Part shown: positions 1 to 39,479 of the stretch, one piece after another | Position numbering within the stretch: position 1 is the first letter of the stretch | How the letters are laid out: the number at the start of each line of letters is the position of its first letter | The notes under the pieces: generated by a model | What the model was told of the DNA's origin: nothing | The model's database searches: none | What the model saw: only the letters and a program-made list of their open reading frames with translations | Assembly: GCF_030028105.1 (NCBI RefSeq) | Contig: NC_092379.1 | Span: 46,300,150-46,364,149, forward strand | Source of the DNA: Mobula birostris | Taxonomy: Eukaryota | Direction of reading: 5' to 3' | Length of the DNA stretch: 64,000 bases | Position numbers and translations under genes: made by a program

Positions 1-1883
1 CTAATTTTAGCCCTGTATTTAGAATAGTTGGAGAGTGGTAGTTGCTGGCAACTGGAACCCACAGTGTTCACAGACCTCTGGTGTCCTGATATGCAGCCAC
101 TGTCGAAACTGCAAAGCAGTCAGCACCTCCTAGCATTGCTACTAAAGCGAGTGTGGTAAAAGCATAGGTCCAGCATCGTCTGTTTCGCAGCGCGGGTGTC
201 CTTATGCTGGGGACCTTTCTGACTAGGCTTATTGGAGTAGACAAAGGATGATGAACGATGCCCCGCTGCCTAGTTGAGTGTAAACTACCAACCATTTTAG
301 CAAGTTCCCAAAAGCCTATCGGAGGTGCATTAGTGAGGGCTACACAATCTGGATCAGATATTTGCGCATGAAGTGTTTTTAAAATCAAAACAAGGATGGT
401 GATTTCCCAAGAGGGACCAGATGTAGTCCATTAGCTTCACAGACTTACCATCACTGAGACCGGATAAGGAGAGCAAAGGTTTGGCACGCTCAGATGCTGA
501 TACTCCAAAGGTCTGTAAAAAGTGATTCAAAAGGTTTCAAAAGGTGTACTTAATGTCAGAGAAATGTATACAATATATATCCTGAAATTCTTTTTCTTTG
601 CAAACATCCACGAAAACAGAGAAGTGCCCCAAAGAATGAATGACAGTTAAAATGTTAGAACCCCAACTCCCCCAGTTCACCCCTCCCATGCACAAGCAGC
701 AAGGCAACGATAGCCTAACCCCCCACTAGCAAAAAGCATCAGCGCCCTCCACCGAGCACTCAAATGTGCAGCGAGCATCAATAAAGACACAGACTTGCAG
801 TTCTCCAAAAACTACTCATTCACCCAGTAATTTGACATACGACAGTCTCTCTCTCTCTCCCTAATAAGGGAAAAAGAGATGCCTCATTTCACAGCGAGAG
901 GAGAAGTATAACAAACAACTCTCCAATTTACGATGTTAAAAGTCTGTTGCATCATTTTTTCCGAGCTCTGTGCCCAGAGAGTTGGCACCAGAAGGGCACA
1001 GCTCTCCAGACACACAACCCCTGGCATTTAACCCGCTGCTCCCAATGTTCCATGTTCTTCCGCAATACTTTAGTCAGGGGCACCAGTCTAGAATCAGCAT
1101 GTCTCCAGAGCCACGAAAATCCCGAGCCCAGAAGACGCGCTCGCCTTCCAAGCCACATGCTTGGGATATCAAAAAGTGGCTGGTCATGAGGCCCTGAGAG
1201 CAGGTCCCAATGCCACAAAGAACCGAACTCAGAGTGTAACTACAGGTCAGTGTCTTCAGACAACCTTAAACAGAAAAGAAAGAGACATCAAAGAAAGAAA
1301 CTGAGCTGTTTCCGAAGATGCAAGCAAAGAAGTCACCAGCATCGTGACTTCACTCCACCTCCAGATGATATTTCAGCAGTTGGTATTTATCTTGTTCAAG
1401 GAGACTCATGTTAGCAGCCATGGAACTGCCGAGCGATGCTACCACATAGAAATATTTGGTATTGGCTGCAGAGATTTCTCGAAGGGCAAACTGGGTATCC
1501 ACTTGTACAAACCAAGCGATGGCATTTTGCTCCCGAAACTCTGGCAATTTCAGTGTCTGTGTTGTCCAACAGATTCAATAACTCCTGAATCATCAAGGGG
1601 AGTCACCAATGAAGGTTTTCCACAAATAAAATGAGGCGAGGTGATTTATGTTTAATGAAACCCATAACACATTTTATTGAACTCCGAAACCTACACAACA
1701 AAGGAGCGCTAACAGACTTTTACGTAATATCGTCATTGCGTCAGACCAGCCTCTTAAAGTCAAACCACAACTCAATGTCAATGGTTGTGAATTGTGTACG
1801 TTTATCCCAATTATATTGTAGAATGCCTACAGGATGGCTTTTAGGAGCAACTTGTCCGGAAGCCCACCAGGGAACCGGCTGTT

Positions 1884-4234
1884 TTGGATTGGGTGCTGTG
1901 TAACCAACCTGAGGCGATTAGGGAGCTGGAAGTAAAGGAACCTCTTGGAAGTAGTGATCATAATATGATTGAGTTCAGTTTCAAATTTGAAAAGCAGAAG
2001 CTGGTATCAGGTGTATCAATATTTCAGTGGAACAGGGGAAATTACAGTGGTATGAGAGAGGAACTGGCCCAAGTCAATTGGAAAAGTAAACTAAATGGAG
2101 GGACGGCAGAGCAGAACTGGATGAAATTCCTACAAGAAATAAGGAAAATGCAGGAAAAATATATTTCAAGAAAAAAGAAAATCATGAATAGAAAAATGGC
2201 ACAAATGTGGCTAACAAGAGAGGTTAAGGCAAAAATAAAAGCAAAAGAAACGGCGTACAAGGAAGCAAAAATTAGTGGGAAAAATGAGGACTGGAAGACC
2301 TTTAAAAACTTACAGAAAGAAACTAAGAAAGTCATTAGGAAAGAAAAGATGAATTATGAAAGGAAGTTTGCGATTAACATAAAAAAGGATACTAAGAGTT
2401 TTTTTAAATATATGAAGAGTAAAAGAGTGACAAGGGTAGATACGGGACCGATTGAAAATGATGTTGGAGTAATTATAATGGATAACAAAGAGATGGCGGA
2501 GGAACTGAATGAGTATTTTGCATCAGTCTTCACAGTGGAAGACATGAGCAATATACCTGATAGCCAGAGGTATCAGGGAATAGAATTAGGTACAGTCAAG
2601 ATAACTAGAGAGAAAGTGCTTGGGAAGCTAAGTGGACTAAGAATAGATAGGTCTCCCGGCCCAGATGAGGTGCACCCAAGGGTTCTGAAGGAGGTGGCTT
2701 TGGAGATTGTGGAAGCAGTGGAAATGATCTTCCAGGAATCAATAGACTCTGGCATGGTTCCGGAGGACTGGAAGGTTGCAAATATAGTTCCGCTATTTAA
2801 GAAAGGAAGGAGGCATCAAAAAGAAAAATAACAGACCTATTAGTCTGACATTGGTAGTTGGAAAGATATTGGAGTCAATCCTCAAGGACGAGGTTATGAA
2901 ATACTTCGAGGTGCATGACAAGATAGGCCAAAGCCAGCATGGTTTCATGAAGGGAAGATCCTGCCTTACCAACTTATTGGAATTTTTTGAGGTAATCTCG
3001 AATAAGATTGACAAAGGAGAGGCTGTGGATGTTGTGTATTTGGATTTTCAAAAGGCCTTCGATAAGGTGCCGCATATGAGGCTGCTTTATAAGATGAGAG
3101 CCCACGGAATTATAGGAAAGTTATTCAAATGGGTGGAGCATTGGTTGATAGGCAGAAAGCAAAGGGTGGGAATAAAGGGATCCTATTCTGATTGGTTGCC
3201 GGTTACTAGCGGTGTTCCGCAGGGGTTGGTGTTGGGGCTGCTTCTTTTTACAATGTACATCGATGATTTGGATTATGGATTAAATGGTTTTGTGGCTAAG
3301 TTTGCGGATGACACCAAGATAGGTGGAGGAGCAGGAAATGTTGAAGAAATGGAAAGGTTGCAGAGAGACTTTTTCAGTTTGGGAAAGTGAGCAAAGAAAT
3401 GGCAGATGAGATACAACGTTGACAAATGTATGGTTGTACATTTCGGAAAAAGAAATAATCGGGCTCATTATTATTTAGATGGGGAGAAAATTCAAAAATC
3501 GGAAGTGCAAAGGGACTTGGGCGTCCTCGTGCAGGATACCCTAAAGGTTAACCACCAAGTTGGATTGGCGGTAAGGAAAGCGAATGCTATGTTGGCATTC
3601 ATTTCAAGAGGAATAGTGTATAAGAGTAAGGAGGTGTTGATGAGGCTCTATGGGGCATTAGTGAGACCTCATTTGGAATACAGTGTGCAATTTTGGGCCC
3701 CCTATCTTATAAAGAATATACTGATGTTGGAGAGAGTTCAGAGAAGATTTATGAGGATGATTCCTGGAATGCAGGGGCTAACATGTGAGGAGCGTCTGTC
3801 GGCTCTTGGATTGTATTCATTAGAGTATAGAAGAATGAGAGGGGATCTCATAGAAATGTTTCGAATGTTGAAAGGGTTGGACAGAGTAGATGTGGAAAGG
3901 TTGTTTCCCTTGGTGGGTGAGTCCAGGGCAAGAGGCCATAGTCTTAGAATTAGAGGGTACCCAGTTAAAACAGAGATGAGGAAATTTTTTTTTTAGCCAG
4001 AGGGTCGTGGATTTGTGGAATTCGTTGCCACATATGGCTGTGGAGGTCCGATCATTGAGGGTGTTTAAGGAGGAGATTGACAGGTATCTAATTAGTCAGG
4101 GTATCAAGGGATATGGGGAAAAAGCCGGAAATTGGAACTAGATGGGTGAATAGTTTAGCTCATGGGGGAGCTGCGGAGCAGACTCAATGGGCCGAATGGC
4201 CTACTTCTGCTCCTTTGTCTTGTGATCTTGTGAT
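1884..4234 (+). mobile_element. 5'-truncated CR1-clade (HER1-like) LINE, frameshifted ORF2
   Basis: ORFs 1884-2831, 2851-3390 and 3406-3996 carry the endonuclease end (LGSSDHNMIEF) and RT motifs (QHGFMKGRSCLTNL, VYLDFQKAFDKVPH, GVPQG, KFADDTK). The element ends in a (TCTTGTGA)2 tail. Confidence 0.92.
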
Positions 4235-5439: not shown

Positions 5440-6874
5440 TTTAAGTTGCCAGCACCTTGACAGACAGTCAGCAATCACATTTTCCGTTCCTTTTATATGT
5501 GTTATTTTAATAATCCTCTAAAACCAGGCTCCAACTTAGCAAACTTCATAGTGGCCAAAAACACTAATGAGTTGTGATCAGTGTAACTTCTCAGTGGTTT
5601 TCATCCCAGACCAAGATAACAAGGGTCGTCCCATACCAACTTAGCGTTCTTTGGCAAGAGCTTATTAAGAGGGTGGGTAATATCCGCAAAGTTCTTGCAA
5701 AACTTCCTCTAGTACCCCCCCATCTCCAAGAACCTTCTCAGGGCTTTCTTGTCTGTCGGGGTTGGAACGTCAGAGATAGCTCGCACCTTAACTTGCATTG
5801 GTGCCAGCTGCCCCTGTCTTACCACAAATCCCAGATAAGTGACCTTCACGTGGCCAAACTCACTTTTTGCGAGGTTCAGTGTCAGGTTGGCTTCAGACAG
5901 CCGTTTAAACAACTCCTCTACTGCCACAATGTGCTCCTCCCCCCAAAAAGTCCACCAAGGGGTATCTTGAGGGCCAGGTTAAGAATCTCATCCCCATAAA
6001 TTTTTGGCACCACCCCCCTTTCCTCATCTGCAGGCACGGTACTTGGTCTCCATTTCTTCCTTAGTATTCCCTCCTCCATACAATAGCCCACTGGCTCCCT
6101 TTTTAATTCTACTTCAGAGAGAGCTGTCTCCGCCGAAACCATCAGCTCCTCGTCTCACTCCTGTGCCTGTACAAATTCCTTCCTGGCTAATGCTAAGTCT
6201 GCCTCAACTCCCTCACTTCCTCCTGTTCCACTACGCTCCTTCTTTTCACTTTCTACCTCCCCCGGGTACAAGGCTGGTAGAAACGTCTCAGCTAAATTTA
6301 CTTTGGCAGCCTTTCTGGACACACGCCGAGTCACTGCGCAAACGGGATAAACCTGTGAGTCCATGGGCGGGGCCTCAATGCTGGCAGGCTGTCTTGTTAG
6401 TTTTACTGCTGAGAACACATTTCCACCGGCGAGGTCATTACCGAGTAAGACCTCCACGTCTTTCATCGGTAGTTCGGGCCTCACCCCGATCATGACCGGT
6501 CTGGAGACCAAGTCGCTTTGTAGGTGTATCTGGTGCAAAAGTACTGCTTCAGTCCTTTTTCCAATGCCTCTTATGACCCTGACCTCCCCAGTCTGGGTCT
6601 CTGAACTAAAGTCTAACACACTCTTTAATATCAATGACTGACACGCTCCCGTGTCTCTCCAGATCCGTACTGGAACCAGGTTTAACCCCTCTTTCACCAA
6701 CACCAATCCAGCCGGGATAAACCTCTCGGGCCCTTCCTGAACTTTGTCAGACCTCTTCTCTCCTAGCGGTTTGCTTACCAGCTCAATACAGCCAGTCGGA
6801 ACCGCCGTTTTCCCTTTCTCCATCTCCTTCTTTGGGGCAAAGCACCTGGACGCAAAGTATCGACTTTCCCACAA
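5440..6874 (-). pseudogene. Deleted pol: protease region, integrase N-terminus, RT end, RNase H end
   Basis: RDTGACQSLIL (protease); VVPKIYGDEILNLA...PLGG (decayed integrase H2C2 start); VTYLGFVVRQGQL (RT); WSLVLEDY...HIKGTENVIADCLSR (RNase H end, about 5440-5550). Confidence 0.8.
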
Positions 6875-8011
6875 TTATAGCATACGACCCCAGGAGACTT
6901 CCTACCAAACTGCTCCCGGTCTACCTTATCCTTCTCACCAGTCCCTGGCTTACTTTCTGACTTTTCTGGCAGACTCTCCCCGCCGTCCTGGCTACCCTTC
7001 TGGTAGCCTTTACTCGGGGCAAACTTCGTTTTATGTGTCAACGCGTACTCATCCGCTAACTTAGCAGTTGCGGCTAAAGTGTCTGCCTCATTCTCATCTA
7101 GGTAGGGTTTCATACCTTCGGGGACACAACCTTTAAACTGCTCAATCAGGATTAACTGTAGCAGTCTGTCATAATCCCCATTGACCCCTTTCGAGGCGCA
7201 CCAACGCCCACAATATGTCTGCAGCTCACGGGCAAACTCTAAATACGTGTGGCCCCATTGCTTCCTCGCATTCCGGAACCTCTGCCGGTATGCCTCCGGG
7301 ACCAACTCATAAATCCTGAGTATGGCCTCTTTCACCACCTCATACCTCTGGGCATCTTCTGCGGACAAAGCCGAGTAAGCTTGTTGGGCTTTTCCTTTAA
7401 GTACACTCTGAAGCAAAACAGCCCACTTATCCCTTGGCCAGTCCCGACTTGCAAACCTTTTCAAAATGGAGAAAGTACCGATCAACATCGGTCTCGTCAA
7501 ATGGGGGAACCAGCCTAACCTCCTGGGTCACCCTGAAACCGCCACCTTGGTTCGGCATGGGCCACTGCGCTGCCATCATCTTTAACCTCTGCAGCTCAAA
7601 TTCCCTTTCCTTCTGTTTCTCCAACTGCCTCTCTTCTCGCTCCAACTGCCTCTCTCTCTCCCTCTCCTGCCGTTCTAACTGCTTCTCTCTCCCTTGCCGT
7701 TCTAACTGTTTCTCTCTCTCTTCGTGTTCTAGCTGTCTTACCCGGAACTCATGCTCGAGTCTCATTTTTTCCATCTGCACCTGTACTGCGTCTCCACCAG
7801 GTTTTCCCATAGATACCACCTCCAGCTCCCCTTGGGGAAACACACCTTTAGACACATAATGCTCTATGATAGCTCTGTGCATCTCCTCTCTCCTCATGGT
7901 CGACTTACCCTTAAAAAGATTCAACCGTTTGGCCACAGCTGCCAATTCTACTTTCCTGGCATCCTCTAATGCCTCCAAGGTCGGCACCTTTAGAAATTCC
8001 TCAATCTCCAT
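6775..8011 (-). pseudogene. Frameshifted gag with SCAN domain
   Basis: ORF 7427-8011 (coiled coil, LVPPFDETDVDRYFLHFEK) and ORF 6775-7500 (AYRQRFR...LILIEQF...LADEY; degenerate zinc knuckle CYNCGK). Confidence 0.85.
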
Positions 8012-8110
8012 TTCTGCTGTTTGTCTTTTCTTTCTTTTGGGAATTTTAACCCAATCAATTTACTCCGTCCCAAATTTAGCGTTCAAAATCGCGGATAAAA
8101 TCCTCACTTA

Positions 8111-21600: not shown

Positions 21601-22179
21601 TAAAGTATTTTGTTGGAATACTCGGCCACCTCAAATGGTGTCACTGAACAGGCATGGCTCTATCATAGAAACATGGTCCCTGAACTTCGTTCTCTTGTCT
21701 ATGCAATTTATTCATTCGATTACTATTAACAGAAAATAACATTTCATAATGAAATAAAGACTGAGGATGCGAGTGACGAGTCCAAGCCACATCAGTCTCT
21801 ATGTAAATACATGGCCCGAACCTCTCTTTTCAAATTTTCCTCTCACCATCAATGCATGCCCTCTAGTATTACACATTTCAATCCTGTTGAAAATATTTCG
21901 GCTTCCTGAAATTTATATGCTTCCCATAATTTTCTAACGTGCTCTCAGGTCTCGCCTTCGTAGGCCACTCAAGCATAAACAACCCTAGTTTCCCCAAGCT
22001 CTCCTTATACTACATAACCTCTAATCCAGACAGAATCCTTATAAACCACTTCTGCACATATCAAACTGCAACTTTACTTCCCGAGGCTTGAAAACATATC
22101 TCTGGCTAATAAAGGCAAACGTAAGATTTGCTTTCTTTACCACACTATCAAATTGTGCTGCCACTCTGAGAGAGCTGGG

Positions 22180-24885
22180 ACATGGACCCCCAAGATCGCT
22201 CTGTACCTGAAAGGCGCAGAGACACATGACATGATCACTTGGGGTCTCCCAATGTCTCGGAAGAGGCGCCCCACTCACTCGTTTGTCGATCTGATCAAAG
22301 AATTAAAAGAGGAAGATAATGCGACGGAGGCGCGTCAGGTCTCCGTCAGCAGAGTACAGTCCGCGGTAGTAGCCTCGGTGCTAGAGATCCCTGATAGCCC
22401 TCCCTTGGGGGTGATAAGTGAACTCGTTCCTGAGATTGAAACTGAGATATCCATGTTGTTATCTGCAGGTGCGACCACTCCGCATGACAAAGCCGACTGG
22501 GAGTCGAACCCCCTGAGGGGACGGACCAAGCAGTGGGCTGCTAGTGAATGGGGTCCCGCGGAAGGGGAGAGACCGGTATTCTCTGCGATAACTGTGGGGA
22601 AGAGAAACATTTCAGGTGGGAGTGTGAAGGCCGCGAAATCTTCGGAGAGTGAGCCCCCAGCTACTTAAGCGGAGAAAGACGAAAGGAAACTTAGAACCCA
22701 GTGAGGGAACGGCCTGGCTTCTCGGGGGGAATGCGTTCCAATCAATGTATCAACGAACACCCTGAAGCAAAAAAACCTATTCCTGAAGGCTTAGCGGGGC
22801 CAAGCTCCAGTGTATCGCTACGGATCGAGGGTATTTATGCTGGAGCCATTTTTGTCACAGGCTGTCAGGTTACTCTGCTGTATCGTTTGTTTTACAACCG
22901 GTATTTGACGCATTTACCATTGACGCAGTTCAATGCACTAGAGATCTGGAGTCTTAGTACGGATGACTACCCGTATGATGGTCACTTGTCCTTGAATCTG
23001 GAGTTTTCGGAGACAGATGTGGGAGCAGGCGAGGTCCGTAATACATTTGTGTTAGTTTGTCCGGACCCGGTCGGACAGCGCAAAGCTTCAGTTCTTTTGG
23101 GGACGAATACCCCTATTGTGAAAAGGCTAATGGGAGCCTGCAAGGAGAAAGTTGGAGAGAGTTTTCAGAGAACATTGTCTATTTACCTCATGTTCCGAGC
23201 TGCTTCTGAGGAAGTGTGTGGCCGCACTGGGCTGGATGATGAGCATAAACGGGGGACTGTGTGGTAAACCCAGTCCAAACCAGTCGTGTTACGGCCTGAG
23301 GAAGTAGCTAAAGTGACGGGAAACCCCGAATTTCCCGGAATGCCTGATGTCAAGGACCACTTGGTGGATGCTCCGGAAGACCACGAAGAGAAGTCATCCT
23401 GACCTGCTGGGGTATTGGTGAGACTCGAGCTGCAGAAGCCCTCGGTTGCACAAGTCAACAGGATGACTGTGATTCTCAGGAACACCTCGGAGAGGGAGGG
23501 CACCCTTAGCCAGCGTATGCCAATGGCACCCCTCTGTCCGGTGACGGTAAAATCTAGTGTCTCTGTGAGACAAGTCGGGAAGAAACTCTCTCCAAAAAAG
23601 GGAAATTTGACTGCCGAGTCATTCAACTTTTGGGGATTCCCTGGTATCTGGAAGCTGGAAGGGAAGTTCGATAGAGAAGATGTTGAAGATGGAAGATGTC
23701 TTTCCCACTGATGCGTTTGATGTGGGTTTTCCAAGAGCACTAGCCACACCATTCGGGAGACAGAAAACACCCAGTTCATAGACAGGTCGCGGCGACTGGC
23801 ACTTGCAGACGTTTAGACGTTCGGCAGCATCTCCGGAAGCTGAAGGAAGCTGGGATCATCACTGAGTCCAGAAGCCCTTATGCGTCGCTAATAATGGTGA
23901 CCAAGAAGAAGAATGGGAGGGTACAGATGTGTGTGGACTATTGGGCTCTTAACGGGCGTACAGTCGCCGACCAGTATACTGTGCTGAGAATGGTGAATGC
24001 GTTGGCCTGTCTGAGTGGTGCGATGGACGTCAGGAGTGGATATTACCAGACACCTACGAGTGAGGCTGACAAAGAGAAGACGGCTACTGGGATTCTTCCA
24101 GTTTGAAAGGATAGCCCAGGGCATATCAAGAGCCCCCCGCGACTTTCCAGCATGTCATGGAGAAAGCCGAGGGGGATATGAACTTGCTTAAGGTGTTGCT
24201 CTACCTGGATGATCTCACAGTATTCCGGTCCACCTTGAACGAATATGAGGCTGGACTACTGAAAGGTGCAGGGCTGCCTGAAAGATGCAGGGTAAAACTT
24301 TCCCTGGACAAGTACGGGACGTCTATCAACTATATGGGGCACATAGTCTCAGGAATGGAGTAGTTAATGATCCGTCTAAGATAGAAGCAGTGATCACAAG
24401 GCCAAGGCCCCAGTCTGTGAGCGTCCTGACCTCGTTCCTTGGATTCTGTGAGAAATATCGGAGGTTCGTGAAGGACAATTCTAAAGCGAGTGACCACTTA
24501 AATCAGCTTCCGTGCTGTTACACTCTCTGGGGGAAGAAAGGGAGGAGGACTAAAAGAGAAATTGGCAAAGATTATTTTAGCCACTCAGAACTTTTTGGAG
24601 CGAGATGGGATCCGAAATGTGAAGAGGCCTTTCAGTTGCTAAAGGAACAGCTGAGGAAAAAGGCTGTGCTGGCTTTTGCAAACCCCCGATTGCCGCATGT
24701 ACTGCATACGGATGGCAGTAGACAGGGCTTCGGGGAGTTCTGCTTGCGGGACCAGGGCACAGGATTGACACCTGTCGCTTTCGTCAGCTAGGGTCAGTCA
24801 ACCTCTGAGCGAAACTACCCCACACACAATTTGGAGTTCCTGGCTTTGAAATGGGCTGTAGTGGATAAGCTAAGTGACTATATGT
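22180..24885 (+). mobile_element. Truncated gypsy retrotransposon (PNMA-like gag, protease, RT, RNase H), multiply frameshifted
   Basis: SFVDLIKELKEE gag motif, CX2CX4HX4C knuckle near 22585-22630, decayed protease IFVTGCQVTL, RT (MCVDY, DVRSGYYQ, LYLDDL), RNase H (LHTDGS; LKWAVVDKL). Confidence 0.85.
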
Positions 24886-24886
24886 A

Positions 24887-24996
24887 TACAACATGAATTC
24901 TGCAGGTGCTGGAAATTCAAGCAACACACTCAAAGTTGCTGGTGAACGCAACAGGCCAGGCAGCATCTCTAGGAAGAGGTACAGTCGACGTTTCAG
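24887..24996 (-). repeat. Penelope terminal-repeat fragment
   Basis: Reverse complement reads GGGTCTCGGCCTGAAACGTCGACTGTACC...GATGCTGCCTGGCCTG...CCAGCACCTGCAGAATTC. Confidence 0.75.
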
Positions 24997-26600
24997 GCCG
25001 AGACCCCAGTTCCTGCCCAGGAAGAGCTTGCCCTCCACGCCTTTCGAAAAGCGCTCAAGCCAGAGCGTCTTCGGCAGCATGTTCCCCTGACATCACCATC
25101 ATCACTGGCAGAGGCAAAAGGACGAAGAAACTTCAGTCCCCCAAGGCATTCTAGTGTCACCCGGCAAACCGCGAGGTTGGGCTTATGTCACCGAGGTGTA
25201 GGAGGAAACTGACGAAGAGGAGCCCGTGACACAGTTCCAACCAGCACCGCGCAGGCCCCATGGCGTGCCGCGGAGTGGTCTCTGCTATCGGTATGGCGAG
25301 GCAAGCCATATGGCCTGGGATTGCTCCGCAGCAGCGCCACGCCATAGCCCAGCGCAGCCAGCCGGCGCCGCTCGACACCTCCAGCAGAACTCTGCGGTTG
25401 TCGCCTCTCCGGGTGGGACGTTTGGGTGAAGAACAAGGCTTTTGCGTGGCCTGCGCAGTAGAGGGCATCAGAGGTCTTGCGTTGGTGGACAAGATATCAA
25501 TCCTCACCATTACCTATCTGGCTTTCCTCGCAACACGGCCCATCCACCCTGCCTGGGTCGACAACCACGCCGGTCCAGCGGCTACGGTTACTGACAACTG
25601 TGCGGCGCTGAGAGGGAAGAGGTGGCTGCGTATCGCAGTGGGGAAAACACAGTAGAATAGGAGGTGCGTATGGCTGACATCCGGGAGTCCTGCCTCATTG
25701 GCCTGGGCCTGCTGTCACGTTGGGGGGCGCGCGTGGTTGTACTGGGGGCAATGCTCTACTTCGGCGCCGACGCCGTGGTCCTCCGGCAGGACAGCTTCAG
25801 AAAGCGGACCCGACAGGATCAGCAGAAAGCACCACGGTCTCATCGCGACCCTCCACAGCGAGCAGGTGAGCGATCCTCTGCTGGTCCGAGTTAAGGGATT
25901 CTTGAGCGTGGGACAATGGCCGGAATGGGCAGAGGTCTCCGCCCTAGATCCAGAGATTAAAGCCCTATTCTCTCAGTGGGCACGCCGGAGTAGCGGGATG
26001 GGCTGCTGTTCTGGCGGAGGCCACGGTGTTACGGTCCGTGCACGGGCTGGTGGGGCAGGCCGTTTCGGGGTCGCAAAGACGTTGGGCAAGTTGCGCGAAC
26101 GCTTCTATTAGCCAGTGTACAGGCAGGACGTGGAACTGTTCGTTCACTACAAAGATGCTTGAACGTCCCAGAACGAGCCGGAGTCAGTCTAGGGCGCCAA
26201 TACAGCAGTACCAGGTGGAGGCCCCCGGTATGGGTCTACTACCGCAGCCGGAAGAAGAGACTATCCCCCAAGTTTGTAATCCATTAGAAGGGGCCGGCAG
26301 AGCTGTTCGACTGCATCTCCGATGTGGTATACCGAGAGCGGTTGCCTGAGTGGCCGAAGCCAGTCGTGCCGAACCGGGTCCGTCTGGCACTCGCTTGGGT
26401 CGTACAGTTATTTGCATGTGTGTTTGTGGGTCACAGTAACTGTAACCAGGGAATGTAATAATCACCTCCCCGTCTGCATGTGACTGAGTGGATTTCTCCC
26501 CGGGTCATAGCGCCCGGTGCTTGTCCCAGTAAACGCGGCTGTTGAATTAAACGAGCTTAACGAGCTTGTTTTCGTTTGTCATCATGGACCAAATGCTCGC
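24997..26600 (+). mobile_element. Second gypsy remnant (gag knuckle, protease, integrase pieces, LTR-like end)
   Basis: GLCYRYGEASHMAWDC knuckle; ALVDKISILT decayed protease; integrase-like pieces at about 26030-26400; TGTAACC-starting LTR-like segment at about 26440. Confidence 0.7.
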
Positions 26601-28739: not shown

Positions 28740-28773
28740 ATGCAAATGAGGCCAACCTCTCGAGGCTTATAAA
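28740..28773 (+). promoter_or_regulatory. IgNAR: IgNAR V promoter: octamer ATGCAAAT (28740-28747) and TATA box (28768-28773)
   Basis: Exact octamer followed 20 nt later by TATAAA, about 90 nt before the leader ATG. Confidence 0.8.
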
Positions 28774-28863
28774 GTCTTTGCTCCTCCATAAGTTTGCACA
28801 GACAACCTGCGCTGATGTCTGGAACCTTCTCTGTCTAGCAGGCTTTCAGTTCGTGAAGGAACG

Positions 28864-28906
28864 ATGAATATTTTATGTGTTTCGATATTTTTAACCTGGC
28901 TGCCAA
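28864..28906 (+). CDS. IgNAR: IgNAR leader exon (MNILCVSIFLTWLP + phase-1 A)
   Basis: ATG at 28864, GTAAGT donor at 28907; resembles IgNAR signal peptides of the MNIFLLSVLLAWLPN type. Confidence 0.92.
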
Positions 28907-29034
28907 GTAAGTGCAGTTCGGTTTTAAAGAGAATAATGGTTACTATATTGCTGTTGCTTCCACAAATTTCATTTTATGTTAAATCTTGTGCTGCTTCAGA
29001 TATGCGATGACTAAATATGTTTTCCTTCCTTCAG

Positions 29035-29306
29035 ATGCCTTCAGTGTATCGGTAGAACAGACACCAAGAGAAGCAATAAAACAACCAGGCGAAACTCTGA
29101 CCATCAACTGTGTTTTAAAAGATGGTAACTGTAACCTGCGTAGCACATCGTGGTTCATCCAAAGACCGAGTCAATCGGGTTGGGATAGGCTGTCTATTGG
29201 AGGACGATATGCGGAATCAGTCAACAACACAACAAAGTCCTTTTCCCTACGGATCAGCAACCTAATTGTTGAAGACACGGCCACGTATTTCTGTAATGCT
29301 CAAGAC
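29035..29306 (+). CDS. IgNAR: VNAR segment, type II-like with CDR1 Cys
   Basis: Acceptor TTCCTTCCTTCAG. Translation (N)AFSVSVEQTPREAIKQPGETLTINCVLKDGNCNLRSTSWFIQRPSQSGWDRLSIGGRYAESVNNTTKSFSLRISNLIVEDTATYFCNAQD. Canonical Cys, Trp and Cys present; CDR2 region deleted as in VNARs. Confidence 0.96.
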
Positions 29307-29344
29307 CACAGTAACGAAGCTGAGCACACGCCAATTCAAAAAGT
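29307..29344 (+). other. V 3' RSS: CACAGTA - 22 nt - TCAAAAAGT
   Basis: Heptamer 29307-29313 immediately follows the V coding end; nonamer 29336-29344. Confidence 0.9.
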
Positions 29345-29539
29345 TTGAAAATCTTTCACGCGAGAATCTCTGACTGCTTCGTTCTTATGGAAAAGAAAAT
29401 TACTGAGCAGCAGTTGATTCCGCTATAGAGCGAACGTACATTAGTACTAAGTTGGCGACAGTCACAATGCCGCTTATGTCCAAGTGGACACAGCTGAAGG
29501 TGCAGCGTCAGTATTCTCCCAGAGTTATGTAAATGGAGA

Positions 29540-29616
29540 CTTTATTGCTATTGATTCAACCACTGTGCCAAGGAACAAGCGACAGTGCCACAGTAGTCTA
29601 AGCCATAGCACAAACC
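29540..29616 (+). other. IgNAR: D segment 29568-29588 (CCAAGGAACAAGCGACAGTGC) with 12/12 RSSs
   Basis: 5' RSS CTTTATTGC-12-CACTGTG (heptamer 29561-29567); 3' RSS CACAGTA-12-GCACAAACC (29589-29616). Confidence 0.9.
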
Positions 29617-29918
29617 TCCGAGACAGTTTTATTTTTTAAGCTCATCTATTTGTAAAAAGGATTACAAAATATGCCTTTACGTGCATGGATGTTACTCAAC
29701 ATAGCTTTTCAAACGATTTCACTTCTCCTTTATGTTGAATTCTACTTACAGTCCCTGGTACTCAAACAGCGAAATGCCAGTTTTATTATCATATGCGCTT
29801 ACAGCGCACTGAATAAATACAAGGGCGGGTGAAACTGAAGGAAATGGAATATATTGGTCAGCCCTTCGTTCCTGTATTATTGTGGAAAGCCTCCGCCTAT
29901 CTTTCGGTTTTAATGATT

Positions 29919-29957
29919 ACTTTCTGAATTGAGCTGAAAAGCAACTTAATCAATGTG
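29919..29957 (+). other. J 5' RSS: ACTTTCTGA - 23 nt - CAATGTG
   Basis: Nonamer 29919-29927 (reverse complement TCAGAAAGT); heptamer 29951-29957. Confidence 0.85.
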
Positions 29958-30003
29958 TGCAAATACCATAACGGAACTGGTACAAAGCTGACTGTGAAAC
30001 CTG
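29958..30003 (+). CDS. IgNAR: J segment (CKYHNGTGTKLTVKP + phase-1 G)
   Basis: GxGT-x-LTV motif; GTAAGT donor at 30004. Confidence 0.93.
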
Positions 30004-32519
30004 GTAAGTGATATCTTTTATTACATTTTGAGCAAGCACGTACTTTTCCCCGAGGTCAAGTATAATTATATTCTCGTTTAAATGATGCAATCTGAAAAGG
30101 GCAGTATGATTTTATTTTATTTTTTTTGGAGTATAAGCATTTCACTGAGACACCCCAGAAGAATTTAAGTATACGTCATTCTCCTCCCAAGATAATACCT
30201 TCGCTCGTTTTAAAAAACGAACGTTGGAGTATTTTTTACAAATTGAAGCGCACAAATTACCCTCGACCTGCTACGCCCCACCCACGTCCGACGGTTACTT
30301 TAAAGTATTACCTGCTGTATTGATGTAAGTGCCATGTCCTCATATCTTGGCATATTTGAGTGTGGATTTACTCTCCAATGGTTGCAGACCCATGCAGAAA
30401 AGAACTTTGAAGATGAAATAGGTTTCAGTACAGAAGGGATCGATAGCTTAATAACCTGATACTTTGAGGGGGTTGTTAGAACATATGCTTATTGCAAAAA
30501 CAACTTGCCATTTAGCTGCAATGGAAGAAAGAAATGTCTTCTATTTAGAAACACATACCATTCTCTAACAAATCCATACATTTAGAAGACCAGGTTGAAA
30601 CAAATTTTATGTTGTCAGAATCGTTGGACTTATATAACTTTAGTTATAATTTGGTGTCAATGGTGAGAGTGTTCAGGGAGGGCAGAAGTAGGCTAAAGGT
30701 CTGTGCGCAAGGCCGGAAAAGATACTGAATGAATGCCAACATAATCAATATCGTCTTTGAAAGCGGAGCACAATAATATTAAGTCTGTACCATCTCGCTG
30801 AATGCTTTAGTCAATTGCCACGGCGCTATATTTAATTAAATGCTACACTCCAGATCTTAATGAATGACATTCCATATGTAGATTATAAAGGTTTACAGTG
30901 TTAATCAGACTGTTTTGTGGTACAAAAGATAAAACTGTCATCATTGAAGCAGTCTGCTGAAATATAGGTTGCAATGGAAACATTGCTGCGAAACGGGTTT
31001 TAATTTTCATCAGTCAATTGAATGATAGCGTCTACAAGTAGATCCTTCCCAAAGCAAACTCAAATGTAAGCAAACCTCTGACACTATTATGAGACCGACA
31101 AATGTCAGGGAAGTAATTTGCAAAAATATCCATCATTCGTCCAATTTACTTGACCTTATTGCTATTTGTTTGCTTCAACTTTCTTAGTTTTAAACATGCT
31201 GTAAAGATCCTTTGTCCGAGTTTAGTCGTGTTTAAAAGTCCTCTGAATCTCGTTGTTTATGGAGTTTTGTGGGAACCCGGTACAATTCCACTTGTGTTTT
31301 TGTTTTGTTAAATAAGCAAGTAAACAACATCGCCTTTTTTCGTATATAGCGCTGTGGTGTATTACTCCGTCTACCCGGCTAATTTTCACCCAAATTAATG
31401 TAGACCTCCCCTTGCGTTTTGATGCTTTTGGGAAAGGAATTTCTCAGACGTCAAGCACAGTCCATTCCATGCACTTAACTGAGAAACTGAGAAGGAATCG
31501 ACATTTGAGAAGAGTACCAGAGGGTGAATTTATTAAATATTTAGAAACACCATCAACACCCTTTCTATTTTATTATGCTACCTGCAATCGAAGGGAAGCT
31601 GTCTGATACCAGCACCTCTTCTTCAGTCCAATAAAATGTATTGGACTACTCTTTCACTTCATGGTCGTCAGTCTTATTATAAGCTCTATATCTCCCCTCC
31701 TTCTGTAATATGCGATGACCGTTTTCTTTGTATGTCCGAAACGATCTCTGCTTTAAAAATTATGCCAATTTTCTCATTCTGCATTCGAATAATTTCAACA
31801 TTTGCAATACCCTGTGAAAGAAATTAAATATTTCCCTAATCTCTATCCTAAAGGGGAAATCCCATATTTATGTTCCATTTCACTCCCACATCCGAAAGAC
31901 ATGCTGTTGGTTAGCTAACTGGCAAATTAGTATTGTCTACAGTGCTTAGAACAATGATAGAATTTGATGCAATTGATGTGGTTGTGGGGGCGAATAAACT
32001 AAAATGGATTAACGTAGAATTATTGCAACTCACTTATGTAACCCTAGCCTAATCATAGGACGATTTACTAACCATTCTGACTTTGGACGATAGAATTAAA
32101 TGACAGTACCTGGGAAACCCACACGGTCATGGGGAGAACAAGCAAGCTCCTTAGAGACGGCGTCAGAATTGAACTTTGTACACTGACACTTCGAGCTGTG
32201 ATAGTGTTGCGCTAACGGCAACGCTTTTGTGTGTCTTGCACTTCTCCATAACTCTTTCTAAATATCCATATTCCCTTAGTCCATATCTCGGAGACTAATT
32301 TTAAATATTCGGGACCCAAGTACCCATCCCTGTGATTCTAGTGAGCAGTTAGCATTGTCCTATTACAATGTCAGCCATATTCCAAAGATGTCTGCTATGG
32401 TTTAGTGAATGTGGGCATGCGCTGGAAACGTAGCGACAATTACGGGCAGTCCAGCACCTTCCTGACTAAATGGATTTAACGCAAACTACTCATTTCACGA
32501 GTTTGCATCAGTTTCACTC

Positions 32520-35284: not shown

Positions 35285-35605
35285 CAAAACAACCGACTCC
35301 GCCAAACATCAATCTTGTCTATTCTGCAACTGCCGAACAAAAAGCACAGGGTTTTGTGCAATTGATTTGTCTCATGAGCGAATACCTACCTGAAAACATC
35401 GCAGTGACCTGGCAGAAAAACGGACAAGCCGTACAGTCCGGCTTTACCACCACTTCTTCCACTGAAAGTTCAAGCGAAACGTTTACTTCAGCAAGTGTGC
35501 TCAAAGTGCCTGTGAACGAATGGGCCAGTGGTGCTGTGTACTCGTGCCAAGTATCCCACTCTGCAACCAGCAGCAACATCCGCAAAGAAATACGAGCTCA
35601 GTCAG
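35285..35605 (+). CDS. IgNAR: IgNAR C1 exon (intact)
   Basis: AKQPTPPNINLVYSATAEQKAQGFVQLICLMSEYLPENIAVTWQK...YSCQVSHSATSSNIRKEIRAQS closely matches shark IgNAR C1. AG/GT sites, phase 1. Confidence 0.96.
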
Positions 35606-36645: not shown

Positions 36646-36948
36646 AATTCGCATTGTTTCTCGGTGATCCCACCGTTGAATAAATGTGGATGAACAAAAC
36701 TGCCACACTGGTGTGCGAAGTGATCGCTACAACTCCAGCTGAGGTTTCCATCTCTTGGACAGTGGTTGGGAAGGAAAGAGCTGATGGCGTTCAAACAGAA
36801 CAAGCAGCAAAGATCGGGAGTCAGTACGTGACAGTCGGCCGTTTGACCAGCAGCGTGGCCGAGTGGGACAGCGGGGTAGAATACTCCTGCTCGGTGCAGG
36901 ACAGTCAATCAGCTGCTCCCCTATCAAAAAGGACACGAAACGCCAAAG
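36646..36948 (+). pseudogene. IgNAR: IgNAR C2 exon with in-frame TAA at 36681-36683
   Basis: EFALFLGDPTVE*MWMNKTATLVCEV...EWDSGVEYSCSVQDSQSAAPLSKRTRNAK; homologues read DPTVEEIW. Splice sites intact. Confidence 0.92.
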
Positions 36949-38666: not shown

Positions 38667-38984
38667 CCAAAGCACTGGAACCAACGGTACATCTCTTTCC
38701 CCCCTCTGCAGAGGAGATTCAAACTGCGGGTATCGCTACGCTCACATGCATGATAACGGGATTCTACCCCGATGACATAACCGTTTTGTGGCAGAAGGAC
38801 GGAGCCGCATTCTACTCTAACGCTACCAGCTTCCCCACTGCACTTCAACAGGATATGACCTTCAACACCAGAAGCCTCCTTTACTTGACTTTGGCCGATT
38901 GGAAGAAGGACGCAACATACTCCTGCGTCGTCACGCACCCACTTTCACAATCTACTGTGAAAGCAAACTTCAGCACCCGGAAAA
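38667..38984 (+). CDS. IgNAR: IgNAR C3 exon (intact)
   Basis: AKALEPTVHLFPPSAEEIQTAGIATLTCMITGFYPDDITVLWQKD...FPTALQQDMTFNTRSLL...YSCVVTHPLSQSTVKANFSTRK. Acceptor TTCTCTTGCAG, donor GTAAGC. Confidence 0.95.
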
Positions 38985-39479
38985 GTAAGCACAATTTGCC
39001 AAAAGGCTCACATCCATTCCGTTCTTTACATCCTAGTCAAGAGGTAAAAATACAACAGGAGGTCGGCAATGAGCAGATTGAAACGATCATTACTGTAGTA
39101 CTGTATTAGTAATCAGACGTCTCCGACGATCCGATACAATAACATATGTGAGCGTCAACTAAAATTAGAGTTATATAATCGGATTTCTGTTGAACATGCG
39201 GAGACAAACTGAACTATAGTGTTAAAATACCTCACCAATAGGATCTCAATAGGGTAAAGCTGGAAGAACGTGTATAAATATTAATTGATGAATGACACTA
39301 TAAACGGAGCTATTCTTGGCGTTTCTAATTACGTTCTAAGATCATACACCAATCGACCACACTTGTAAACAGACTTATTTAAGGTCAGGTGCAATATGAT
39401 CAATAGATAAGAATTAACATACTAATAACTCACAAATGATAGAGTGCTGATTTAGTGATGAGTCTCCGACACGACCGGC

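Follow-up and report, generated by a model that had tools for sequence, protein, structure and literature searches.

The IgNAR clusters of sharks are described with three D segments between V and J (PMC4279169, PMC4622739, PMC8692893). Among the published forms, types I and II contain three D segments and type III contains two, as D1 and D2 of nurse shark type III are fused in the germ line (PMC4622739, PMC3149040). In bamboo shark, the clusters IgNAR2, IgNAR5 and IgNAR6 carry pre-joined D segments and lie beside an unjoined cluster at the same locus (PMC8692893). A RAG-like joining in shark germ cells was concluded from the comparison of split and joined paralogs (PMC2193156). Cartilaginous fish are known for germline-joined segments, and the IgNAR cluster described here, which was found in a 64-kb stretch of the Mobula birostris genome (NC_092379.1, positions 46,300,150 to 46,364,149, referred to as the window; all coordinates count from its first base), contains a fused D segment that matches this pattern. 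With one D segment, it lengthens the published series, apparently in a ray.

To judge from its sequence, this is very probably a germline IgNAR mini-cluster consisting of leader and V, D, J and the constant (C) exons C1 to C3, the single D segment of which would result from a RAG-type germline joining in an ancestor. As a new case of D segments joined in the germ line of an IgNAR gene, it goes one step beyond type III, leaving one D segment where type III has two. The cluster is neither a new kind of receptor nor an evolutionary bridge, and an origin of IgNAR from NAR-TcR is not addressed by it. In the literature searches no published description of a single-D IgNAR cluster was found, by which the existence of one is not excluded. 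A 2024 paper on the nurse shark locus makes no mention of D segments. The cluster would represent a clean natural case in which an antibody gene has been remodelled in the germ line by recombination of the V(D)J type. The same genome also contains unfused sister clusters for comparison, and the influence of the number of D segments on the length and the cysteine content of complementarity-determining region 3 (CDR3) of VNAR domains becomes accessible to study.

A V-D-J unit with one D segment

The leader and VNAR exons, both open, the V segment with a recombination signal sequence (RSS) of 22-nt spacer (22-RSS), the D segment with two 12-RSS and the J segment with a 23-RSS are located within about 650 bp, all on the plus strand (Table 1). 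The RSS were scored with a weighted heptamer/nonamer scan of both strands of the region 29250-30010, and the scan was extended over the whole 64-kb window. Exactly four good RSS were detected in this region, in the right order and orientation, and each of them adjoins a coding end. RSS-like sites of equal score occur in the whole window at 0.13 per kb per strand, and because four abutting RSS stand against this background, the V-D-J layout is well beyond chance. The D segment (29568-29588) is the sole unit of the 64 kb in which 5-40 nt are enclosed by two 12-RSS. The layout of types I and II, in which three D segments require four rearrangements, was not found, this being the only D-like unit.

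The first-pass annotation of this DNA had proposed an IgNAR cluster in which V (22-RSS), one D (12/12) and J (23-RSS) form a 12/23-compatible unit of about 650 bp. This arrangement was confirmed by direct reading and by the RSS scoring, which was carried out on both strands of the V-J interval and revealed the four RSS and no further functional D/RSS pair. The assignment as an IgNAR cluster with one 12/12 D segment was likewise upheld by the structure matches of the VNAR exon given below and by the single D unit. It is extremely unlikely that weak D/RSS pairs hidden between V and J make this a multi-D cluster. Isolated heptamer-like strings do exist there (e.g., CACAATG at 29463), but none of them has a nonamer at a distance of 12 or 22-23 nt or a partner RSS on its other side, and the best leftover scores are at background level.

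The VNAR exon encodes a single-domain V of the NAR type, and the 30 best solved-structure matches of its translation are all VNARs (E 5e-29 to 2e-20). In addition to the two canonical cysteines, there is an extra one in CDR1 (KDGNCNL), and framework regions 2 and 4 are devoid of cysteine. Because of this pattern, the V is type II/III-like. A protein search with the V open reading frame (ORF) returned four bamboo shark VNARs only, with 53-57% identity, and no genomic relatives; an exact look-up of the same ORF in public assemblies gave no match.

Composition and origin of the D segment

For the comparison with related clusters, contigs of public sequencing runs were aligned to the V-D-J stretch, using four runs labelled RNA from the organism best matching the window as well as DNA runs at 95% likeness. 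The sequence of the relatives past the alignment ends is visible as 30-nt ends. Contigs of related clusters from both DNA and RNA runs show 91-96% identity to both non-coding flanks of the D segment, and the homology breaks off inside of it, on the left at 29570 or 29572 and on the right at 29580, 29582, 29585 or 29586. RNA-run contigs of 299-483 nt reach from V or the V-RSS to exactly 29570 (92-95% identity) and continue with GTATATACTGT and then CACAGTG, which are their own D1 and its 3′ heptamer. In the RNA-run contigs of 525-1178 nt, the alignment begins only at 29585 or 29586 (91-94%). Upstream of it, two of them have 658 nt that do not resemble the window and end in ..GATGTG CCAGTACT, their own 5′ heptamer and D3. 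One DNA-run contig aligns up to 29572 and continues with CGCAAAC CACAGTG, its D1 being CCAAGCGCAAAC. Other DNA-run contigs align from 29580 or 29582, after ..CTGATGTG CAA or ..CTGATGTG CAACA, and contain an unfused D3 of 12 nt.

The D segment of the window is composed of CCAAG, the 5′ end to which D1 was trimmed at the joint (5 nt), 3-8 nt that are found in neither partner seen and may be non-templated (N) addition or a D2 remnant, and a D3 part ending in ACAGTGC. The 5′ 12-RSS of D1 and the 3′ 12-RSS of D3 were retained, and both inner RSS were lost together with about 600 nt or more of intervening DNA. Joined and unjoined homologues have the flanks in common and their homology, which extends up to 29567-29572 and resumes from 29580-29586, ends at the coding/RSS borders, as in germline-joined segments. 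Both breakpoints fall within coding segments of 12-14 nt, and because of this position and the extra bases, the pattern resembles that of a RAG coding joint. The one-D state appears to be derived and young, since the flanks are 4-9% diverged from relatives of the three-D type and the D segment combines the start of a D1 with the end of a D3.

According to the proposed mechanism, the DNA separating D1 from D3 would have been deleted from a standard V-D1-D2-D3-J ancestor cluster. The spacers of the RSS of IgNAR D segments allow D1 to be joined to D2 or D3. The loss could have occurred in a single 12/23-legal D1-to-D3 deletion, in which D2 was skipped, or in two steps, D1 to D2 and then D2 to D3. 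The product would be a coding joint of 21 nt flanked by the 5′ 12-RSS of D1 and the 3′ 12-RSS of D3, and it would represent either a direct D1-D3 joint with N-like bases or a D1-D2-D3 joint with a trimmed D2.

The interval might also have been removed without RAG, by replication slippage or by microhomology between D1 and D3, as the D1 of relatives (CCAAGCGCAAAC) and the D3 part of the window (CAAGCGACAGTGC) have a 6-nt string in common. Such an event via CAAGCG would yield CCAAGCGACAGTGC, whereas the window has about 7 extra bases (CCAAG GAA CAAGCG..), and it would have to account for a loss that takes exactly the two inner RSS and the long interval between them, with both breakpoints inside short coding segments. 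This explanation is considered improbable.

Besides the layout itself, a distinct simplified IgNAR lineage, or one linking IgNAR and NAR-TcR, had been proposed for this locus. The V units of NAR-TcR contain one D and one J segment. No legal arrangement is simpler than one 12/12 D segment placed between the 22/23-RSS of a V and the 23-RSS of a J, so that an ancestral one-D NAR layout could have been retained here or could have been introduced by a NAR-TcR/IgNAR recombinant. The J sequence GTGTKLTVKP looks like that of a T-cell receptor (TCR), and linkage of IgNAR with NAR-TcR genes is described for elasmobranch genomes (PMC12227049). An ancestral layout is nevertheless very unlikely. The identity of the flanks to clusters with separate D1 and D3 indicates that the difference is recent, and the mosaic of D1 start and D3 end argues in the same direction. 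Furthermore, the 3′ half of J (TKLTVKP) is common to other IgNAR clusters at ≥90%. NAR-TcR has a NAR-type V in common with the window, but it sits in the TCR locus, and there the J is spliced to a supporting V of the TCR-delta type that lacks a leader and has an RSS of its own, whereas the J of the window faces IgNAR C1. In the J-C1 intron (30.0-35.3 kb), ten ORFs were examined, none of them with an Ig domain, and the same interval holds no V-like or V-set exon, no leaderless supporting V and no other domain. A recent secondary fusion is thus favoured over a distinct lineage, and the bridge to NAR-TcR appears, from these sequence comparisons, to be without support.

The fused D segment could also be detected in short-read DNA. 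An independent contig of 101 nt bridges 29511-29611 with 0 differences at a depth of 6.6, compared to 7.0 for neighbouring locus-specific contigs, and the three sampled junction 31-mers (3/3) are present in three DNA runs (X1-X3) of one sample. Because of the identical bridging contig and the occurrence of the junction 31-mers in three DNA runs, the layout is not an assembly slip, and together with the full single-copy depth these findings rule out a misassembly and a minor somatic clone in this sample. It is accordingly only with a very small probability that the reference contains a misassembly or has captured the D-D joint of a lymphocyte. Lymphocytes do carry partial rearrangements, and the read support comes from one sample, perhaps the source of the assembly, but the junction bases occur in neither flank homologue and cannot be invented by a misassembly, and a somatic clone would be expected as a small minority of the reads.

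In the stretch 29402-29539, every contig of the best-matching DNA sample differs from the window at 5-6 positions, including 29425, 29434, 29478, 29494 and 29497, although no difference is present in the adjoining D contig. The pattern points to a second haplotype or to a sister cluster of nearly the same sequence, perhaps likewise with a fused D segment.

Several points weigh against a germline fusion by RAG. The role of RAG is deduced from the position of the breakpoints, and the 3-8 nt in the middle of the D segment fit a D2 remnant as well as N addition, the D2 segments and spacer lengths of the relatives lying outside the contig ends. D1 and D3 of the relatives share CAAGCG-like bases, so that short homology may have played some role. 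With regard to the germline state, a single sample, perhaps the individual of the assembly itself, supplies the DNA evidence for the fused form, and the junction words are absent from a second organism or sample (X4-X7), which provides no independent confirmation. There, the wider region is represented by 36-39% of its words, and a D3 was found that is unfused and has nearly the same 3′ flank. The absence fits, as a thin piece of evidence, a recent or polymorphic event.

Comparison with joined clusters of sharks

Like nurse shark type III, the cluster of the window has D segments that were probably pre-joined in the germ line, with fewer somatic joins and a restricted CDR3. In type III, a CDR1 cysteine is paired with a germline cysteine in the D region (PMC4622739, PMC3149040), and the window contains a cysteine in CDR1 as well as in D. 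The two differ in the fusion itself, which connects D1 to D3 in the window and leaves one D segment and two joins, whereas type III has two D segments and three joins. Moreover, C2 of the window carries a stop codon, and the window cluster is known from genomic DNA.

The likeness to the bamboo shark clusters consists in the pre-joined D segments. These clusters contain five C exons as well as secretory and transmembrane exons, in contrast to C1 to C3 in the window, and the report on them (PMC8692893) is silent on which D segments are joined and on any single-D cluster. For the germline-joined light-chain (NS4) and heavy-chain clusters of sharks, the same conclusion was drawn from near-identical flanks and coding-joint-like junctions (PMC2193156; PMC4279169). 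In these cases V-J, VD or VDJ were joined, whereas the D-D fusion of the window leaves the gene dependent on somatic rearrangement.

Constant-region exons, reading frame and transcripts

Downstream of its own J with donor site, the cluster contains IgNAR-type C exons in the same orientation, starting with C1 at a distance of 5.3 kb from the J donor. Because C1 to C3 match 4Q97, 4Q9B and 4Q9C (the latter two being C domains of the 'novel antigen receptor' by entry title), the C exons are, by sequence, genuine IgNAR exons. The annotated splicing of a one-D unit to genuine IgNAR C exons therefore holds with respect to the exons, and the splicing itself was seen only in paralogous transcripts. All three exons are of splice phase 1. 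The stop codon in C2 is located in the A strand (..GDPTVE-stop-MWMNKT..), and the rest of the exon is open with good splice sites. Since C1 and C3 are both of phase 1, skipping of C2 would keep the frame, and a V-C1-C3 product is possible. IgNAR forms with three C domains are known (PMC5192425).

In the 25 kb after C3 (38985-64000), no C4, C5, secretory or transmembrane exons were found by tblastn and motif searches. Of a full set of five C exons with exons for the secretory and transmembrane forms, the window contains C1 to C3 only, and more C-side exons could be located beyond the window end.

Table 1. Coordinates of the IgNAR cluster features in the 64-kb window.
Feature	Position	Strand	Characteristics
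Ig-type promoter	28740..28774	+	octamer ATGCAAAT 28740-47, TATAAAG 28768-74, read directly
Leader exon (MNILCVSIFLTWLP..)	28864..28906	+	donor GT at 28907
VNAR exon, open	29035..29306	+	ends ..YFCNAQD; V-set by Pfam
V RSS	29307..29344	+	CACAGTA 29307-13, 22-nt spacer, TCAAAAAGT 29336-44
D 5′ 12-RSS	29540..29567	+	CTTTATTGC 29540-48, 12-nt spacer, CACTGTG 29561-67; homologous to the D1 5′ RSS of relatives
D coding segment, single, fused, 21 nt	29568..29588	+	CCAAG GAA CAAGCG ACAGTGC
D 3′ 12-RSS	29589..29616	+	CACAGTA 29589-95, 12-nt spacer, GCACAAACC 29608-16; homologous to the D3 3′ RSS of relatives
J RSS	29919..29957	+	ACTTTCTGA 29919-27, 23-nt spacer, CAATGTG 29951-57
J segment (CKYHNGTGTKLTVKP)	29958..30003	+	donor GT at 30004
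IgNAR C1 exon, open	35285..35605	+	4Q97 (nurse shark IgNAR), E 5.6e-40 over 103 residues
IgNAR C2 exon	36646..36948	+	best match 4Q9B, 6e-28; in-frame TAA 36681-36683
IgNAR C3-type exon, open	38667..38984	+	4Q9C, 6e-36; donor GT intact at 38985

The D segment is open in all three frames and reads PRNKRQC in frame 1. As V ends on a codon boundary, D comprises 21 nt and J starts in frame, the untrimmed join reads ..YFC NAQD PRNKRQC CKYHN GTGT.., with a CDR3 of about 16 residues. The shorter CDR3 that had been expected from a single D segment is for this reason doubtful. D and J each encode one germline cysteine codon, and these cysteines could pair with that of CDR1, as in type II/III VNAR. In the fused cluster, the four somatic joins would be reduced to two, V to D and D to J, each of them 12/23-legal. 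The resulting CDR3 would be less diverse and partly hard-wired, that is, of restricted diversity rather than notably short.

The J segment of the window begins with the cysteine codon TGC and one paralog J in the RNA begins with TGT. The DNA contigs contain further paralog J segments, with the starts TTGCGGAC.., TAATGAAC.. and TTAAAAAC.., which lack an initial cysteine codon. The 5′ ends of J vary between clusters, because this codon is present in some and not in others.

The RNA data were searched for transcripts of the cluster. Its own V letters are absent from the RNA contigs, as every contig over position 29228 has G. This position is C in the window and in the DNA of the same organism, and T at 29267 and 29269 is likewise private compared to the RNA. 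The junction words are absent from all RNA runs checked, and the J-to-C1 splice products in the RNA differ from the C1 start of the window by several bases. Because of the TAA stop codon in C2, the C4, C5 and tail exons that were not found and the V letters absent from the RNA contigs, this copy of the cluster probably represents a pseudogene or, at most, a weakly used gene.

A more far-reaching interpretation is that the fused-D cluster, possibly as one of several copies in this genome, would be a working 'innate-like' IgNAR of a ray. Two RAG joins would complete an in-frame CDR3 that is encoded largely in the germ line and bears cysteines, the cluster would be used early in life as in nurse shark type III, C2 would be skipped to give a V-C1-C3 chain, and the joint would show non-templated, TdT-like addition in germ cells. 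Taken together, these propositions are unlikely.

The intron behind the leader exon comprises 128 nt, and the splice joint 28904->29035 is present in RNA contigs of paralogs. At the other end of the unit, paralog contigs from RNA pass at 30003 into sequence resembling C1. The RNA-labelled runs X9-X11 and X18 contain unrearranged paralog contigs, which extend from the V-RSS to D1 and from D3 to J and include intergenic DNA. Such contigs represent either sterile transcripts of germline DNA or carried-over DNA. V-to-J joints (29293 to 29978) occur in these runs, too, as do J-to-C1 splices from other clusters.

Long open frames are present on both sides of the cluster. Downstream, they are located at about 53.8-57.0 kb and at 62-64 kb, several of them being reverse transcriptase-like by eye only. 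Upstream, those at 1800-4000, 5700-8060 and 22000-25000 resemble reverse transcriptase or gag, again by eye only. If the upstream frames truly are such elements, the IgNAR gene would sit in repeat-rich DNA.

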